Source: Macrostomum hystrix (Eukaryota; Animalia; Platyhelminthes). Taken from it: DNA of 64,000 nucleotides. Shown here in pieces: positions 6,940 through 17,260 of this stretch (positions within the stretch are counted from its first letter, which is position 1; the number at the start of each line of letters is the position of its first letter). Location: the NCBI GenBank assembly GCA_950097015.1, contig CATNEN010000012.1:1674001-1738000 (forward strand), written 5' to 3'. Position numbers and translations under genes: made by a program. The notes below the pieces were generated by a model. The model made no database searches and was not told the origin of the DNA. It was given only the letters and a program-made list of their open reading frames with translations.

Positions 6940-8437
6940 TTAAAGATGAAAGAATCCAGTACTGTGCCGAAGTGCCGCCTTCCAAACTCGCCGATGCAGA
7001 CTGGGCAATGGCGCACCATCTGGGCTGGCCAGCACGATGGAGCTGGACACCGGCGGCCCGGCGTGTCTCGGATGCAGCCAGTCCGAGTCCCAGCCGCTGA
7101 GCCAGTGCATCCGCCGGGCCCCGAGTGCCCCACCGAGCACTCCGGTCACGAAGATGTCTTCCAGGCGAAGGTGATTCCTCCAGGCGGCGCACTTTAATAA
7201 CCGCGGAGGGAGGTCGCCCGACATAAGGTAGGCAAGGCCCTTGCAGTGCAGCGGAAACTTCGCCTCTGGCCACTCCGCCTCGCTCACGTACCACTGATAG
7301 CTGGAAAGCGAGATTCGATCCTCATTGGCTGCTGTTCTGCAGTAGAATGTGTTGTTCAATCCTGCCATGCGCTCAGTTACCAAGACGACCAGTTGGAACA
7401 CATTCACAAATACAAAGTCGTCAACCTTCAGCAGGTACTGGGCACCGGAACAGTGCTGATGAGCCCAGCGCAGGCCATAAAGTGCTTTGCAGGTTGACGC
7501 GCGCGGTTGGCCATCCGGTGAGCAAGGCACCTGTACGAGGTCGGCCGTCTCTTCGCTTTCAGCCTGCAACTCGGCCTGCTGCGTGTCTGTCACTGTGGCC
7601 CCAATAACAAACGCGACAACGAGGCGATGCCCGTTGATGTTGTTCAAGGAGGCCCACGTGCTGCGAATCAGATCGCGCCGCTTCCGCTGGCCGAACTCGC
7701 TGTGCACCAGAACCAGTAGGAGCGGCCTGCCGCTGCACAGGCGGCTCTCGCTGAGAACGAAGTCGCCGGGAGTGTGATCAATCTGCTTGCCCGAGGCCGG
7801 ACTGAAGCCGGGCGACCAACAGCGCTCTCGAATGCTCAGTTGCCACTTAGAGCTAGTTAAGTTGTTGAAGGATTCATTTCCAGCAGGTTCATGCTCTGGG
7901 ACACTGGCTATGGTCGCCGGTTGTGTTGTCCGGGCCGCTTGACGCAATCGAGTCTGCAAATGGAGTCGTTTTACCTTTTTAGGAAGTAAGCCTCAATCAA
8001 TACGAGCACACAACGGTACTTTTATCCGATTGCTAGCCTCGTCAGTCCATACAATACCATCCCAACAACCACAATCCTGGCAGTTCAACTGTATCATAAG
8101 ACTTTTTCTCAAATCACTTTTCCCTTTTTAACATGAGCTTTGAATTAACCTACAGCTTACAACTACGAGCGTAGATGTCAACAGACCAACATTTTGCTTG
8201 AGACATCCAAGTGAGTTTTTGTTTTCCTTATACCCTGGTAATCTTCCGATGTGCTGAATGATGCTGCGGCTGCGGCGGACGTGGCGTCGACATCAGCAGC
8301 TGCGGAATCATCGATTGCTGATTGTCAATGACATCCGCTGGCTTGATGTCGCCCTGCTGCGATACCACTAACAGCAGGCATGTGACACTGCAGCTCAGAG
8401 CAATGAGAGTCCATAGCCAGCGACTAATCTGCCGCAT
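6940..8437 (-). CDS. GT31-family beta-1,3-galactosyltransferase/GlcNAc-transferase-like type II membrane protein
   Basis: Exons 8234-8437 (ATG, hydrophobic anchor WLWTLIALSCSVTCLLLVV) and 6940-7953, joined in phase 0. Motifs RDLIRSTW, YLLKVDDFVFVN (DxD), CKGLAYLMS, EDIFVTG. Confidence 0.92.
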
Positions 8438-9545: not shown

Positions 9546-9677
9546 CCTACCCGATGGAGCACGGAACCTCATGAGTCCATGACTCTGTAATAAGCACATC
9601 ACTCGGTATTCTACAACAACTTCGTAGCTCGTACGTCCCTTCTTATTCTGACTCCTGCGGCGTTCCTTCGGGTCTAT

Positions 9678-10448
9678 GAGAATTTCCCGCACGAGATTTT
9701 CCCCGCAGCGAGTTTTTCCCGCAGCGAGTTTTTCCCGTCGAGTTTTTCCCGCAGCGAGTTTTTCCCGCAGCGAGTTTTTCCCGTCGAGTTTTTCCCGCAG
9801 CGAGTTTTTCCCGCAGCGAGTTTTTCCCGTCGAGTTTTTCCCGCAGCGAGTTTTTCCCGTCGAGTTTTTCCCGCAGCGAGTTTTTCCCGCAGCGAGTTTT
9901 TCCCGTCGAGTTTTTCCCGCAGCGAGTTTTTCCCGTCGAGTTTTTTCCGCACGAGATTTTCCCGCAGCGAGTTTTTATCGCAGACTTTTTCCCGCAGAAA
10001 GATTTTCCCGCAAGAAATTTCTCGTGATTGCCTGTTTACCTTCCTACCTGTCCGTCCGTCTGTCTGTCTGTCTGTCTGCCTGCCTGCCTGGCTACCTGTG
10101 TCGACAGACAGACAGGTAGGAAGGTAAACAGGCAATCACGGGAAATTTCTTGCGGGAAAATCTTTCTGCCGGAAAAGTCTGTGCGGGTAAAATTCGTGCG
10201 GGAAAATCTCAGCAGTAAAAGCTCGGCAGGAAAATCTCGGCGGGAAAATTTCCTTCGGGAAACTCTCGCTGTGGTAAAAAACTCGCTGCGGGAGAATCTC
10301 GTGCGGGAAAAACTCGTGCGGGAAAACTCGACGGGAAAAACTCGACGGGAAAAACTCGCTGCGGGAAAAACTCGCTGCGGGAGAATCTCGTGCGAGAAAA
10401 ACTCGTGCGGGGAAAGCTCGGCGGGAAAAATTCCTGTGGGAAATTCTC
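9678..10448. mobile_element. Foldback-like element: long inverted arms built of 14-16-bp subrepeats around a ~58-bp spacer
   Basis: Starts GAGAATTTCCC and ends GGGAAATTCTC. Inner arm TTCCCGCAAGAAATTTCTCGTGATTGCCTGTTTACCTTCCTACCTGTC (ends 10052) is the reverse complement, with one mismatch, of the sequence from 10111. No TSD seen. Confidence 0.65.
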
Positions 10449-12223
10449 GTGCTCCCGTTACTTCACTGCTTGATTAACTCTCGATTCCACGGGCGTATAG
10501 ACTGCCACTGATAAACGGGAAGGCAGGGGCTGTGGTTCTGTTATCTTATCTCCCTCCATCCTCTAACTATGACAGTCTAATAAACTGATATTTATTGTCG
10601 GACAAGAGGATGGGCAGTCAAAGCAATTAATTTGTAGTAAAGTATAAAACATCATAGGATGGCTTATATTAACTTTTAATCGCACCATATAAAACATCGG
10701 CTCTTTATGTGTGTCAACAATGCGTTTGCGACTCCTTTTCCACAATCCACACTCGTCTCCACTCCTCAACCTCAACAAACTTCACACCTCGCGGTCTGTG
10801 TTCAGGAGATGTTTAGAGTTGCGAGCGGCCCGAGGCTGGTGCTGTCTATTTTTCCTTCCGCTTCTGATCCAGTTCTGTTAGTTATAAGTCGATGCTCTGT
10901 TTACTGTTGTTATTCTGGGCATCCTTGCCCAGAATAAAGACTCAATCCCTGAACTAAAGTGCATTAAGTTAAGTCAGCCTGAACCCAAATATAATGTACA
11001 GACTACACTACCGAGTGCAGATTAAAATAAAAATATAAATATTTCTTCAAAATTAAAAACTTATTACTGAAGCATTTAGAGCGGGAGAGAATTCTATCAT
11101 AACAACAACTAAGCACAACTAAGCTTACCACGCAGTGGCCTGGAAAGGGGCGAGAAGTCAGAGGGCGCGCTTCTGGGCCATTATAAAAAGTCACAACCCT
11201 CTGCTTTGTCAAGGGCTGGTACGTATAGTACGTACCTAAGGTCATTTAAATACACAAAATAATTATCCTGCAGGCTGCTCTTGCAGTTTATATATTTGAA
11301 TTGATTTGTAATTTTGTACCTTTAATCATTGTTTTTTTGTTGGACTTGATTGAAAGTGTCAGGGTGCAGAGTCAACAGGCGTTTAGATCTAGATGCTTCA
11401 CCCTTTAATTTGTTAATTTGCACATCCCAAAAATCTGAGCTATAGAAAACGTTTGGTGCATATTTACTAATTGGATTCTATTGTAAACTGGACTGCATAA
11501 TGTTCGCACGTGTTATTTCACTCCTAATATTACAGCTAGTGTCTAAAACTTTTCACTCCTAATATTACAGCTAGTGTCTAAAACTTGATTGGCTGTGGGG
11601 CAGAGGGAAAGGCAGAAATAAACCTGCGAAGATCTACCCATTCCTTACCCTCAACTTACATCAACCCCGTTAAAGGGTTTAGAGGGTAAGAGGTTGAATT
11701 TTAGCGAGCTCGCAAGTTAATAGGAGTAATGGGGTGGGGGGCCTGTCTGGTGGGGGTGTGTGAATTGGGGTGGGTTCAGACTAAGGAAAGCCTAAATGAT
11801 TTGATAAATAGTGGCTCGATGGGCCCCAAGACCCCCCTTAGACTGGCTGCGCTTCAAATTAAGCCTTAAGTTAAGGAGCCCTAGGCTTTTTTATACACGA
11901 AAGAAAGCCACCACACTAAAGATTCAAGACCATAGCCTAATATTGTTTGTAAAGACCACAGGCCTGCCTTCACCGAGCCAGTTTCTGAGAACTTAATATA
12001 CCCCAGCCTAATCTCTGTTCTTGATTTGACATCTATCATTTTCTGTGTCGACATTTTCGAGATTTTGCAGGTAAGCCAATATATAATTTTTTAGTTTATA
12101 GTTGCTTTTTATTTGAACTTGTCTAAATGACAGTTGTTGATAAAAGTCTTCTGCTGGGAGTTTTTCAAAACTAATCAAATAAACTGGCCTGTATTTCTTT
12201 ACCTTGCCCTGTGAGACAGTCAG

Positions 12224-14940
12224 ATGGCTTCTACCGCTACTCAAGTGCAATTCGACCAGGCTGCTAAGGATGACTTGCATCAGCAGCAGCAGCAGTCTTC
12301 ACCACTGCCGCCGCCGCATCCGAAGGTGACTGCAAACAATGAAAATGACTCTGAGACTGGTGGGCCGGCCGCTGCCGATCAGCCCGCTCGCTTCGCCAAC
12401 GGACCCAGTGGTGGGACGGTGATTCACAATCGAGTCTTTGTAGGCGGCATCCCGCCAAACACAGTCGAGGCCGAGCTAACCGAATTCTTCTCAGCGTTTG
12501 GCGAGGTGCGCGACGCTAAAATCATAGCTGACAAGAACGGCGTGTCTAAAGGCTACGGCTTTGTCACTTTTGAGTCTGCTCAGGTGGCCGAGACCATCAT
12601 TAGAGGCGAATCTCGCGACGGCCTGATGTTCCGGCAGAAGAGGCTCAACATTGGGCCAGCCATCAAGAAGCATGTGAGTCTTTTCTGCTTCCTACCTGGG
12701 CTGCACGGCTGGAAATCTTACCAATCCAAAAATTAGCCCACCGGATCCCCATGTCCCCATGTCAAAGGCAGCTAGAATCCCCATGTCAAAGGCAGCTAGA
12801 ATCCCCATGTCCCAATGTCAAAGGCAGCTAGAATCCCTATGTCCCAATGTCAGAGGCAGCTAGAATCTCCATGTCCCAATGTCAAAGGCAGCTAGAATCC
12901 CCATGTCCCAATGTCAGAGGCAGCTAGAATCCCCATGTCAAAGGCAGCTAGAATCCCTATGTCCCAATGTCAGAGGCAGCTAGAATCCCCATGTCAAAGG
13001 CAGCTAGAATCCCTATGTCCCAATGTCAGAGGCAGCTAGAATCCCCATGTCAAAGGCAGCTAGAATCCCTATGTCCCAATGTCAGAGGCAGCTAGAATCC
13101 CCATGTCAAAGGCAGCTAGAATCCCCATGTCAAAGGCAGCTAGAATCCCCATGTCAAAGGCAGCTAGAATCCCCATGTCAAAGGCAGCTAGAATCCCCAT
13201 GTCAAAGGCAGCTAGAATCCCCATCTCAAAGGCAGCTAGAATCCCCATCTCGAAGGCAGCTAAACTCACCATGTCAAAGACAGCTAGAATCCCCATGTCA
13301 AAGGCAGCTAGAATCCCATCTCAAAGGCAGTTTGAATCCCCATCTCAAAGGCAGCTAGAATCCCCATCTCAAAGGCAGCTAGAATCCCCATGTCAAAGGC
13401 AGCTAGGTAACTCCCGACGCTTATCTTGATTCCCTTCTGAAAAATGTGAAATCCTGACAATTAAAAGCAAGCTAAAATCCCAATTCGCAATGGTATAGTC
13501 CCACCTATTGCAGTCCGCGTACCCGAGGCCCGAGTCTAGCAGCAATGGCGTCTTCTTCACAGCCGGCTCCGTGCCGTACACTTATCAGAACGGCATGGCG
13601 GTGTTCCACATTCCCGGCAGCCTGTACCAGCACTACCAGCAGCAGCAGTCGCAGCCACAGCAGCTGGCTGCCATCGCAGGTGCCGGAGGTGAACTGCAGT
13701 ACTCGCCCGGCTATGGCCAGCCCTACACAATGACTACTGCAGCTGCTGCCGCCGCTGCTGCCGCCTCTGCTGCCGCCGCCGCTTCCACGCCGACTGGGGT
13801 GTCCGCCGCAGCTGCCGCCGCCGCCCAGCTGATGTGCCTGCCGGCGCCCTTCGCCGCCGCAGTGTGGCCAACATCCATTACTCACCAATCGCCCAGTCCA
13901 GCTCAAGTGAGTCTACCTTTGTCTATGAGTCTCTATCTCTGAGTACCTGTGAGCCCATCTCGTGCTTATCCTTACCCTACTGTTGCTAGTAGCCAGTTGG
14001 AATTGTTTGTGTATTGGAATTCAGCGAATTGTAGCCATTATCCAGATTCTCAACCCATTTAAATTTGTTTTCGCAGAGCAACACGCCGTCCAATGCGGCA
14101 TACTATACGGCTGCCGCCTTTGGCAGCGGCAGCGGCAACCTCGGAGGGGGCCTGCCCTGCTACAGCAGTCCGCTGGCAGCCGCCGTCAACTGCAACAGCA
14201 GCAACAACAGGACCCCGGTTGTGGCCTACCCGGACTGTCCCGGGGCTTTCATGAGCGCCACCAGCGACTACGGCACTGATCCCAGCTACACGGACCAGTC
14301 CTACGCCAATGAGGTGAGCTACCTCAAATCCAAGTCACACCCACCCCATTCACAATCTCTGTAGTCCCAGTTCCTCCTACTACATTCCCGATCTCTGTAG
14401 TCCCAGTTCTTCACACCCCATTCCCGATCTCTATAATCCCAGTTCTTCACACCCCATTCACAATCTCTATAATCCCATTTTTTCACACCCCAATCCTGAT
14501 CTCTATAATCCCAGTTCTTCACACCCCATTCCCGAACTCTATATAGGGATCGGGAATATGGTCCCCATCCCACTATTTCTAATCGTGCAACGATCTAATA
14601 GTTTTTTTCACCCTCCCAGTCTGCTGAGTACGAATGTGTACCAGTGTACAACCAGCAGCAGCAGCAGCAGTACCACCTGCAGCAGCAGCAGCATATGGCC
14701 TACTCTCCAGCCCCCGGCTATTGCTATGGCAGCCCACCAGTGCTGTGCCAGATGCGAGCCTTTCCTGTCCTGCTGAATCCTCACCAGCAGTACCAGCAGC
14801 AGCAGCAGCACCAGCAGCTCGTTACACCACCTCCGCCAGCCCCTATAGCTCGCATTGTGGCCTTGGACTCCTCGGCTGCAGCCGCCGTTTCCGTTGACGA
14901 CTCTGTAGCTGCCCAAGCCGCTGCTACGCCAGCCTTGTGA
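12224..14940 (+). CDS. boule: Boule (DAZ-family RRM germline RNA-binding protein), 466 aa
   Basis: Exons 12224-12673, 13514-13906, 14077-14313, 14620-14940, all phase 0. RRM with NRVFVGGI (RNP2), KGYGFVTF (RNP1), RLNIGPAIKK. Boule-type PYTYQNGMAVFH motif. Q/A/Y-rich tail. Confidence 0.93.
12750..13406. repeat. 24-bp minisatellite (ATGTCAAAGGCAGCTAGAATCCCC) in boule intron 1
   Basis: Direct reading; some units carry an extra ATGTCCCA-type insert. Confidence 0.95.
14353..14545. repeat. ~33-35-bp tandem repeat (CTCTATAATCCCAGTTCTTCACACCCCATTCCCGA) in boule intron 3
   Basis: Direct reading. Confidence 0.88.
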
Positions 14941-15924
14941 ATGCCGGCCTCGAAGCCCTCGATGGCCGAGGTCGGCCGCACAGTTTAAGAGGCCCGGGTC
15001 TTCCAGCTTGTGGCGCTAACTCTCATATTATTTATTTACACTAATTTCGGTACCCTTCTTTGTGTACCTATGCAACTTTAATAGCAAAAATATTTTCGCA
15101 TATTTATATCTATACCTACACAAACTGTTCGGTCGCCAAACCCGCTTTGCGCCCCAAAATATTCATTGCCGTCTCCCCTGTACCACACTCACCACCGCTG
15201 GCCTGTCGTCTAGATATCCATCGACCTCGTATCTCGACTGGCGCTAAAAGTGTTCCATTTTTCTGCTCATTTTTTAGCACGGGGCAGCGGCCGTGCTTGT
15301 CGTTTTATCGCTTTGTGCGTACTGAATATGAAAAAACAGGTCGGCAGAACTTTGCTGCCCGCTGTTTCATAGAAAATCTGATTTGCATTCGTGTTGGAAA
15401 AGTAGAGTGTTAGTTAACGTCAAAACTCTCTTCTAGATATTGTTTCGGAACCTTGTCGTTTGTTAAGTCTCTTTTTTCGTGTCTGTTTTTAAAGTTCCCA
15501 GTGAAACTCAACCATCCCTTAGCTTGATTTCCTAGGATCCTAGGCCTCCAACTCGCTTCCTTCACCAATTCTCATCGTGTGCTCATATATATCTACTAAC
15601 AAAATTCGCGCCTCCAATAAAAAGCTATTTTATTTGTTTAACCTTTTTATTAGCTTACTTACTAAACTGTATTAATTAGTTCGATTCGTTGATTTGTGTC
15701 AATTAGTGAAGTAAATGCGTTGCATGCTGCTATTGCCAAAATAATAAACTGGAACTTGTAGGCGCCTCCGAATCATGATTTCTCATCAAACTCCGCTTTA
15801 ATGGCCTGTAGCAGAAGGCTCATAACTGTGTTTTATTGTCCTTCATTTTTAGTCTGCTTTTCGCAATTTTAGTCTCCTTTAAATAGAGAACTCAGAATAA
15901 ACATTTAAATTTTCTTAGAATTTT

Positions 15925-15962
15925 GCCAATGCATTTCGACCACAATCGGTCATCTTCAGGGC
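15925..15962 (-). ncRNA. Minimal type I hammerhead ribozyme motif (Penelope-like/retrozyme type), minus-strand copy
   Basis: Minus strand reads GCC-CUGAAGA-U-GACC(gauugu)GGUC-GAAA-UGCA-UU-GGC: conserved core, 4-bp stem II, palindromic AUGCAU stem III, 3-bp stem I. Confidence 0.7.
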
Positions 15963-16222
15963 GGACACATCAATTAAACTCACAGAACCAAGTTATATAT
16001 ATTTTTTAAGAAATGAAAACTGTACATTGCAAAGTGCGAATCAATTTCGGTCCAGTCCGGTTAACAAGAGAAAGAAAACAACAACCAAATAAAGTACAAC
16101 GACGCTTCTAACATAGCTAAAACATAGCTTGAGTTGGCGGCTTGCACCCCCCATGGCTAACTGACTGTTCAAATATGGTTTCTGAGCCTTAATGTACATT
16201 TTTTTTCTCCTTTTTTCTCTTG

Positions 16223-16266
16223 TTTACCCTGAAGATGACCGATTGTGGTCGAAATGCATTGGCAAA
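16223..16266 (+). ncRNA. Minimal type I hammerhead ribozyme motif (Penelope-like/retrozyme type), plus-strand copy
   Basis: UUUACC-CUGAAGA-U-GACC(gauugu)GGUC-GAAA-UGCA-UU-GGCAAA. Stem I pairs 5 of 6 bp; predicted cleavage after 16260. Confidence 0.7.
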
Positions 16267-16387
16267 ATTCTAAGAAAATTTAAATGTTCATTCTGAGTTT
16301 TCACTATTTAATTGTTGTCAAGCGAGCTACTCTACCTGAATTATTCTCCTTTACTTAAAGTCCCAGAATCCCTCTTACATTCCTAGT

Positions 16388-17260
16388 CTACTTCCCCTTC
16401 CATTCCCAGTCGCCTTCTCCTTCCCCTTATTTCCAGTCTCCTTCTCCTTCTCCTTCCATTCCCAGTATCCTTCTCCTTCCCCTTATTTCCAGTCTCCTTC
16501 TCCTTCTCCTTCCATTCCCAGTCGCCTTCTCCTTCCCCTTATTTCCAGTCTCCTTCTCCTTCTCCTTCCATTCCCAGTATCCTTCACCTTCCCCTTCCAT
16601 TCCCAGTCGCCTTCTCCTTCCCCTTCCGTTCCCAGTCTCCTTCTCCTTCCATTCCCAGTCTCCTTCTCCTTCCCCTTCCATTCCCAGTCGCCTTCTCCTT
16701 CCCCTTCCGTTCCCAGTCTCCTTCTCCTTCCATTCCCAGTCTCCTTCTCCTTCCCCTTCCATTCCCAGTCTCCTTCTCCTTCCATTCCCAGTCTCCTTCT
16801 CCTTCCATTCCCAGTCTCCTTCTCCTTCCCCTTCCATTCCCAGTCTCCTTCTCCTTCCATTCCCAGTCTCCTCCTTTCCCTTCCATTCCCAGTCTCCCTC
16901 TCCTTCCCCTTCCATTTCCAGTGTCCTTCCCCTTCCATTTCCAGTCTCCTTCCCCTTCCATTCCCAGTCTCCTCCTTCCCCTTCCGTTTCCAGTCTCCTT
17001 CCCCTTCCCCTTCCATTCCCAGTCTCCTTCTCCTTCCCCTTCCATTCCCAGTCGCCTTCTCCTTCCATTCCCAGTCTCCTTCCCCTTCCTCTTCCATTCC
17101 CAGTCTCCTTCTCCTTCCCCTTCCGTTTCCAGTCTCCTTCTCCTTCCATTCCCAGTCTCCTTCTCCTTCCTTTCCCAGTCTCCTTCTCCTTCCATTCCCA
17201 GTATCCTTCTCCTTCCTTTCCCAGTCTCCATATACTTCTATTCCCAGTCTCCATCTTCTT
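16388..17260. repeat. Pyrimidine-rich degenerate repeat (CCTTCCATTCCCAGTCTCCTTCTCCTTCC-type)
   Basis: Direct reading; it generates the spurious G/E/K/R-rich minus-strand ORFs. Confidence 0.93.

Follow-up and report, generated by a model that had tools for sequence, protein, structure and literature searches.

An inverted pair of minimal hammerhead motifs in Macrostomum hystrix as the probable scar of a twin Penelope-like element insertion

The stretch of Macrostomum hystrix DNA analysed here (64,000 nt, contig CATNEN010000012.1, positions 1,674,001–1,738,000; hereafter the window) carries, downstream of an exon that encodes an RRM, an inverted pair of hammerhead ribozyme motifs set in sequence related to Penelope-like elements (PLEs). 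The pair was first noticed in an earlier reading of the letters (the original prediction), which described a perfect 62-bp inverted repeat at 15900–15961/16227–16288, and this is indeed the longest perfect inverted match. The imperfect extension claimed for it is also borne out, as the repeat runs to TTAAATAG at both ends (15879 and 16311) when one 2-nt indel is admitted. A repeat search of the window places the arms at 15886–15961 and 16227–16302 (76 nt, 97% complementarity, 265 nt between), with the two arms ∼2–5% different from each other. The features of the locus are as follows.

15870–15878, no strand: candidate target-site duplication, left copy (TAGTCTCCT), from comparison with the right copy
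15879–16341: whole putative insertion, two 5′-truncated PLE copies head-to-head with their 3′ ends outward
15879–16199, − strand: left PLE copy, 5′-truncated, 321 nt, no terminal tail, 88–97% identity to sister copies
15916–15971, − strand: minimal type I hammerhead motif, left copy, C3 at 15959 and U17 at 15928
16131–16199, − strand: remnant of the PLE open reading frame (ORF), last ∼23 conserved codons, C-terminus of GIY-YIG, from translation against L037 and family B
16200–16220, no strand: T-rich junction filler, 21 nt, not homologous to the sister copies of either flank
16217–16272, + strand: minimal type I hammerhead motif, right copy, C3 at 16229 and U17 at 16260
16221–16341, + strand: right PLE copy, 5′-truncated, 121 nt, with terminal tail, from sister copies in inverted orientation
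16312–16341, + strand: PLE tail, 30 nt, confined to a single end of this insertion, 30/30 match to the family tail
16342–16350, no strand: candidate target-site duplication, right copy (TATTCTCCT), from comparison with the left copy

Read along the − strand, the left copy presents the ORF end, the 3′ untranslated region (UTR), the hammerhead and the 3′ terminus, and it matched 35–45 sister copies at 88–97% identity over query positions 2–322. Translation of the ORF remnant starts with MYIKAQKPYLNSQLAMGGASRQL, which is identical to the C-terminus of the ORF of L037, a long copy of the window's own family (family A), and close to the 713-amino-acid ORF of a sister family (family B); past the ∼23 conserved codons the reading frame is disturbed. 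What had been taken for a ∼265-bp spacer is instead the remainder of the longer left copy, starting with the last codons of a reverse transcriptase (RT)/GIY-YIG ORF. The right copy, read along the + strand, consists of the hammerhead and the 3′ terminus followed by the 30-nt tail. From query position 344 on, it aligns with sister copies in inverted orientation, and 11 sister copies that have the tail served to place the element end at 16341. The portion common to both truncated copies makes up the inverted repeat. Between them, the filler region 16197–16213 resembles the target sequence 15864–15880 left of the insertion at 14 of 17 positions (repeat family D3), a likeness that could have come from a template switch to target DNA or, in sequence so rich in T, by chance. 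The candidate duplication, TAGTCTCCT(T) against TATTCTCCT(T), matches at 8 of 9 positions, or at 9/10 to 10/11 when the following T's are counted. A CT-rich minisatellite with 23- and 29-bp units lies ∼45 bp right of the insertion, from 16387 to beyond 17200. PLEs favour simple repeats (PMC8557442), and this neighbourhood fits that known bias; a family B copy, L043, sits in a (TAC)n microsatellite.

Each arm carries a complete type I hammerhead motif, as originally proposed, comprising in order CUGAAGA, U, GACC, a 6-nt loop, GGUC, GAAA, UGCA, U, U and GGC. The predicted cut sites at 16260/16261 on the + strand and 15928/15927 on the − strand are correctly derived from the motif numbering. The two arms do have unlike 5′ strands in helix I: UCUGCC, which forms 4 bp with GGCA, is normal for the family, and the left arm departs from it by one change and the right arm by two. 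The left (−) motif forms a helix I of 3 bp, and in the right (+) motif helix I is formed in neither the monomer fold nor the dimer fold. For the family A motif and for the − copy of the window, the lowest-energy predicted dimer is a domain-swapped double hammerhead with AUGCAU as the intermolecular helix III, a fold that the + copy of the window does not adopt in silico. The caution that the AUU cleavage triplet would be suboptimal is fair, as U17 is the norm in the window's family (A) whereas four sister families have C17. Under the NUH rule, U17 is allowed but slower. A covariance model (R1), built from sister-family motifs, scores the left arm at 76.7 bits (E 1.4e-21) and the right arm at 71.0 bits (E 9.6e-20), and its scan of the 64-kb window gave no match besides the two arms; judged as sequence matches, the two hammerhead motifs are far above chance.

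A search of the 220-Mb genome with the element returned 86 matching pieces at ∼35–45 places. These copies share one end, whereas the other varies (query positions 69, 107, 116, 126, 164, 171, 182, 218, 231, 276, 284, 322 and beyond). As the shared end is the 3′ end in the ribozyme sense, the variation amounts to 5′ truncation, which is a mark of target-primed reverse transcription. Copies that reach query position 322 run on for ∼1.05 kb more, giving long copies of ∼1.4 kb, and in the ribozyme sense the long family A copies contain an ORF in which the C-terminal half of an RT (YVDD) precedes a GIY-YIG nuclease. In Pfam searches, the GIY-YIG domain of L037 scores 26.7 bits (cut-off 22.6), and RVT_1 reaches 23–26 bits on the truncated ORFs of the window's family, under its cut-off of 29.6. 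Family B, at 65% amino acid identity to the window's family, retains 713 stop-free codons at four places, and its 713-amino-acid ORF (L043) scores 37.8 bits for RVT_1 (cut-off 29.6) and 29.2 bits for GIY-YIG (cut-off 22.6). The nearest Atlas clusters of this ORF combine HTH_animal, RVT_1 and GIY-YIG and are mostly arthropod, a putative placement of the RT among PLE/telomerase RTs being drawn solely from the domains of these neighbours; no CxxC motif was seen by eye in the stretch linking RT to endonuclease. As predicted from domain order, the element has the architecture of a canonical endonuclease-bearing (EN+) PLE, with RT followed by a C-terminal GIY-YIG. Canonical EN+ PLEs and their complex insertions were reportedly described by Evgen'ev and Arkhipova in 2005. 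The anticipated linkage to RT/GIY-YIG coding sequence is thus corroborated, related copies being found genome-wide and the ORF being carried both by sister copies and, as a remnant, by the left copy itself.

Several details of these copies were recorded alongside. The three longest family A copies stop at almost one point within the RT, and L031/L036 (G000 C12:251822–252829) has a premature stop inside GIY-YIG where other family A copies read through. The family B copies L040–L043 (G000 C1:3859848, C1:8016377, C8:2492782 and C8:2495818) have identical scores and stop-free frames of 404–750 codons, by which family B looks young. At C8, two family B copies stand head-to-head, with another same-strand ribozyme 5.8 kb downstream. 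No same-strand upstream copy, i.e. no direct pseudo-long terminal repeat (pseudo-LTR), was found at the window or at family A loci; such a repeat is usual in full-length PLEs and unneeded in truncated insertions.

The ribozyme itself recurs across PLE families. Four further families (65, 55, 52 and 50% amino acid identity) bear the motif at the same place, ∼230–330 nt downstream of the ORF, and the R1 scan of the genome gave at least 148 matches, more than 25 of which lie 230–330 nt past same-strand GIY-YIG coding matches. Both window arms and all five families keep the core CUGANGA ... GAAA ... UH in type I order. In the 10 aligned sequences from the five families the extra U is invariant (10/10) and G10.1-C11.1 is a G-C pair in 9/10; across families GAAA and A15.1-U16.1 are likewise invariant, and helix III always consists of the A15.1-U16.1 pair with a 4-nt palindromic loop (UGCA, AGCU or CGCG). 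Helix II, by comparison, takes the forms GACC/GGUC, GUCC/GGAC, GGCU/AGCC and GCAC/GUGC, so that three of its four pairs change on both sides while 97.5% of cells stay paired, and the inner pairs of helix I covary as well. Over all helices, 90% of cells are paired, versus 16–36% with the partners slid; 5 of the 9 pairs change on both sides, and the covariation score was reached by none of 500 shuffles. In the alignment of L037, L043, L049, L052 and L054 the ribozyme core forms a conserved island within a diverged UTR. Such an island with covarying helices across PLE families argues that the hammerhead serves the element. The same features as the four descriptor-independent hallmarks of minimal hammerhead ribozymes listed by Cervera & De la Pena (PMC4209133) are present here, and the assignment of the motif to the minimal, PLE-type class was upheld. 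A AATGTTGAT block ∼25 nt downstream of the hammerhead core is conserved in all five PLE families, and the tail motif in families A, B and E; both are candidate protein-recognition or RT-initiation signals.

The arrangement of the two copies at the window is likewise that of its relatives. By a hand count from the R1 genome match table, all 25 ribozyme pairs lying within 3 kb of each other are ordered − then + (tails-out), and none is reversed. Most sister copies carry the tail, and in 12/12 examined twin insertions (nine of family A, namely the one in the window, L003, L004, L006, L007, L009, L011, L012 and L016, and three of family B, L040, L041 and L042/L043) it is present at exactly one end. 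Perfect duplications of 10–11 bp span the whole pair at L003, L006, L011 and L016, and L004 has one of 8–10 bp; family B duplications, likewise perfect, measure 9–10 bp at L040 and L041, and also at L043, where the target is a microsatellite. Perfect duplications, of 8–11 bp, are thus present in eight pairs. At L007 and L009 only short or ambiguous duplications are seen. The tail occurs on either side of twin insertions, and within family A no constant rule assigns the tailed end to the longer or the shorter copy (∼4 long, 4 short, 1 equal). The constant presence of exactly one tail suggests a separate RT start site for each of the two priming events. These observations are in agreement with published work on PLEs, in which an inverted 5′-truncated copy adjoins another copy and a 30–40 bp tail is often found at a single end (PMC8557442), dual minimal hammerheads lie 100–700 bp apart on opposite strands (PMC4209133), and the purified PLE protein cuts and extends both target strands, using two internal RT start sites that lie one tail length apart (PMC11167929). 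The suggestion that inverted copies are habitual in PLE insertions is accordingly sustained, both by PMC8557442 and by the 25/25 tails-out pairs.

Taken together, window positions 15879–16341 very probably represent a single dead twin insertion of a canonical EN+ PLE. A number of observations weigh against this reading and are collected here. The candidate target-site duplication of the window has one mismatch and lies in CT-rich repetitive sequence, such that it could be a coincidence, and the sister pair L012 lacks any duplication. Among the best candidates, which were those scored, there was no full-length member of the window's family, the longest ending inside the RT (∼1.4 kb). The Rfam hammerhead models gave no match at gathering thresholds over the whole window and remained silent at E up to 10 on 15700–16500; they were equally silent on five sister-family loci at E up to 5. 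As Rfam misses all four sister-family ribozymes too, this silence is attributable to the insensitivity of its models to minimal hammerhead ribozymes. Folded singly, the motifs show no advantage over shuffled sequence (z +0.6 to −0.9), although the lack of single-motif stability is uninformative for a motif thought to work as a dimer or with protein. For published minimal hammerheads, cleavage is weak and occurs only in dimers or in the presence of protein (PMC4209133, PMC11167929), and the unremarkable stability fits such dimer-dependent or protein-assisted cleavage. Finally, the integration mechanism is taken from lizard PLE work and would be carried over to the window's family by analogy.

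On that borrowed biochemistry, the PLE protein would nick the two target strands ∼10 bp apart, and each 3′-OH would prime reverse transcription on PLE RNA. One synthesis from each internal start site would yield one tailed and one tailless end; both cDNAs would then be aborted early and their ends joined with short filler. The hammerhead travels as a passenger with the 3′ region of the element, which in tandem copies is the pseudo-LTR. Its role for the element is most likely the processing of PLE precursor RNA, either in the form of a double hammerhead joined by the palindromic helix III or aided by the PLE protein.

That two independent PLE insertions, nested or adjacent, came to be neighbours by chance appears very unlikely. 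The preference of PLEs for simple repeats (PMC8557442) and the CT-rich minisatellite nearby make repeated hits conceivable, and the imperfect duplication at the window would suit two events, yet neither the invariant − then + order of close pairs genome-wide (25/25) nor the presence of exactly one tail in 12/12 pairs would be expected of chance neighbours. At sister loci, moreover, perfect duplications of 9–11 bp span whole pairs, and the arms of the window are only ∼2–5% apart.

The gene upstream shares the + strand with the right-arm ribozyme, which bears on what the twin insertion may do at this locus. The + strand exon at 12224–12736 encodes an RRM (Pfam RRM_1, 58 bits) that resembles DAZL structures (66 bits) and DAZ/DAZL clusters (0.89–0.91), although other RRM proteins score higher, and for the next exon Pfam gave no match with E up to 0.01, not even to the Daz repeat. 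The name boule given to this gene is therefore supported as to RRM_1 and the DAZ-family resemblance, whereas identity as boule was not confirmed. Two tandem-repeat blocks, 13023–13429 and 9674–10477, produce long ORFs of repetitive sequence, in several frames of either strand; ∼24-bp units make up one of the blocks, within the span of the RRM gene, and the other lies upstream. Further off, a 339-amino-acid ORF at 6940–7959 on the − strand has, by eye, the look of a type II membrane glycosyltransferase (galactosyltransferase-like). Upstream of the element there are AATAAA signals at 15616 and 15743, and the mRNA of the upstream gene may thus never reach the insertion.

An RNA copied from the + strand across the locus is predicted to fold into a hairpin of ∼100 bp (−181 kcal/mol, z = −15). 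Of the earlier statement that a read-through transcript would carry both a long hairpin and a sense ribozyme, the hairpin holds as a predicted fold, whereas a free sense ribozyme does not, being sequestered in the hairpin. Dimer action within the locus also falls away, as the motifs lie on opposite strands and no transcript would contain two sense copies. With one sense copy per strand, a damaged + strand helix I and the long + strand hairpin, the ribozyme at the window locus most likely does nothing and is an inert passenger. It is a long shot that the twin insertion acts as a hairpin-RNA trap, in which read-through of the presumably germline RRM (boule-like) gene would give ∼100 bp of near-perfect double-stranded RNA, consisting of the PLE 3′ end with its ribozyme, that could be diced into small RNAs that silence the PLE family; the model draws solely on the predicted fold and the shared strand. 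The broader notion of an exaptation, in which the hairpin or the sense ribozyme shapes the 3′ end of the RRM (boule-like) gene or yields anti-PLE small RNAs, is slightly weaker still and seems very improbable. It draws on the gene and the right-arm ribozyme being on the + strand and on the ∼100 bp predicted + strand hairpin, whereas the AATAAA signals stand before the element, the hairpin hides the ribozyme, helix I of the + copy is degraded, and the locus resembles dozens of neutral sister insertions.

The original prediction favoured a non-autonomous retrozyme-type unit, in which ribozymes at both ends free an RNA of ∼330 nt that is circularised and copied back by PLE enzymes. The hammerhead cores are intact, and a preprint (bioRxiv 10.64898/2026.07.22.740005) proposes that animal retrozymes derive from PLE pseudo-LTRs. 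However, the motifs lie on opposite strands, such that any transcript has one sense and one antisense ribozyme; the interior is a fragment of PLE ORF and UTR; sister copies vary by 5′ truncation and have no common unit length; and a same-strand tandem of the window's family was not found among the genome R1 matches. As the strand arrangement contradicts the definition of retrozymes as same-strand tandems (PMC7229834), this possibility was rejected as exceedingly improbable, and the claim of a defined non-autonomous unit gives way, for want of same-strand tandem ribozymes and given the ORF remnant, to a truncated PLE of autonomous type. Just as improbable is a miniature inverted-repeat transposable element (MITE) or foldback DNA transposon with a hammerhead-like string arising by chance in its terminal inverted repeats, which the locus alone might suggest through its ∼84-bp terminal inverted repeats and short flanking duplication, and which was rejected on the variable inner ends, the asymmetric ends (a tail on one side in 12/12 pairs) and the interior of PLE ORF and UTR, the ‘terminal repeats’ being the 3′ ends of an RT/GIY-YIG retroelement of which many copies are solo (a single arm) and whose motif covaries across families.

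As a PLE twin insertion, the locus is of little importance in itself: it is one among dozens of dead PLE fragments in which ribozymes are passengers, and all of its structural features are already published (PMC4209133, PMC8557442, PMC11167929), so that it represents a textbook PLE scar with no new structure. The genome, on the other hand, brings together several PLE families whose minimal hammerheads covary, along with a conserved tail and the conserved AATGTTGAT block. The clean set of twins (one tail in 12/12, mostly 9–11 bp duplications) fits the in vitro nicking of both strands and the two RT start sites, and these scars could serve to ask whether different start sites are systematically taken by the two strands. 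For annotators, such inverted repeats are to be regarded as retroelement scars rather than MITEs, and the Rfam hammerhead models miss the whole class.

In comparison with known systems, every testable feature of PLEs and minimal hammerhead ribozymes is present at the level of sequence, save the direct pseudo-LTR and a score above the Rfam thresholds. With the minimal hammerhead ribozymes of metazoan PLEs (Cervera & De la Pena 2014, PMC4209133) the motifs share the type I topology, the CUGANGA and GAAA cores, the unpaired nucleotide between A9 and G10.1, the G10.1-C11.1 pair, a one-bp helix III with a 4-nt palindromic loop and a short helix I, as well as covarying families in one genome and dual motifs that lie on opposite strands with a few hundred bp between them. 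They differ in that helix II here has 4 bp, as opposed to 6–8 bp in the Schistosoma and Drosophila PLE motifs (PMC4209133), and in the U17 of the window's family where the sister families have C17. Metazoan non-LTR retrozymes (Cervera & De la Pena 2020, PMC7229834) have in common with the locus a type I hammerhead, low GC content, a retroelement context and probable mobilisation by PLE enzymes, but they are same-strand tandem repeats of 150–450 bp whose ribozymes are canonical and whose expression yields circular RNAs of 170–400 nt, whereas the window has an inverted pair with a coding remnant. The locus belongs with the canonical EN+ PLEs of the Penelope/Poseidon type (Craig et al. 2021, PMC8557442), which likewise have RT followed by a C-terminal GIY-YIG, heavy 5′ truncation, an abutting inverted 5′-truncated copy, a 30–40 bp tail at a single end, a simple-repeat neighbourhood and a hammerhead in the 3′/pseudo-LTR region; the copy in the window differs in being without an upstream direct partial copy and hence has no pseudo-LTR in the strict sense. 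In the Poseidon PLE of Anolis carolinensis, as examined in vitro by Frangieh et al. (2024, PMC11167929), the ribozyme overlaps the ORF start, whereas here it lies ∼230–330 nt downstream of the ORF stop; the lizard hammerhead is assisted by protein and is not needed for insertion in vitro. In that system both strands are nicked and extended and two RT starts explain the optional tail, and the scars described here fit this scheme.

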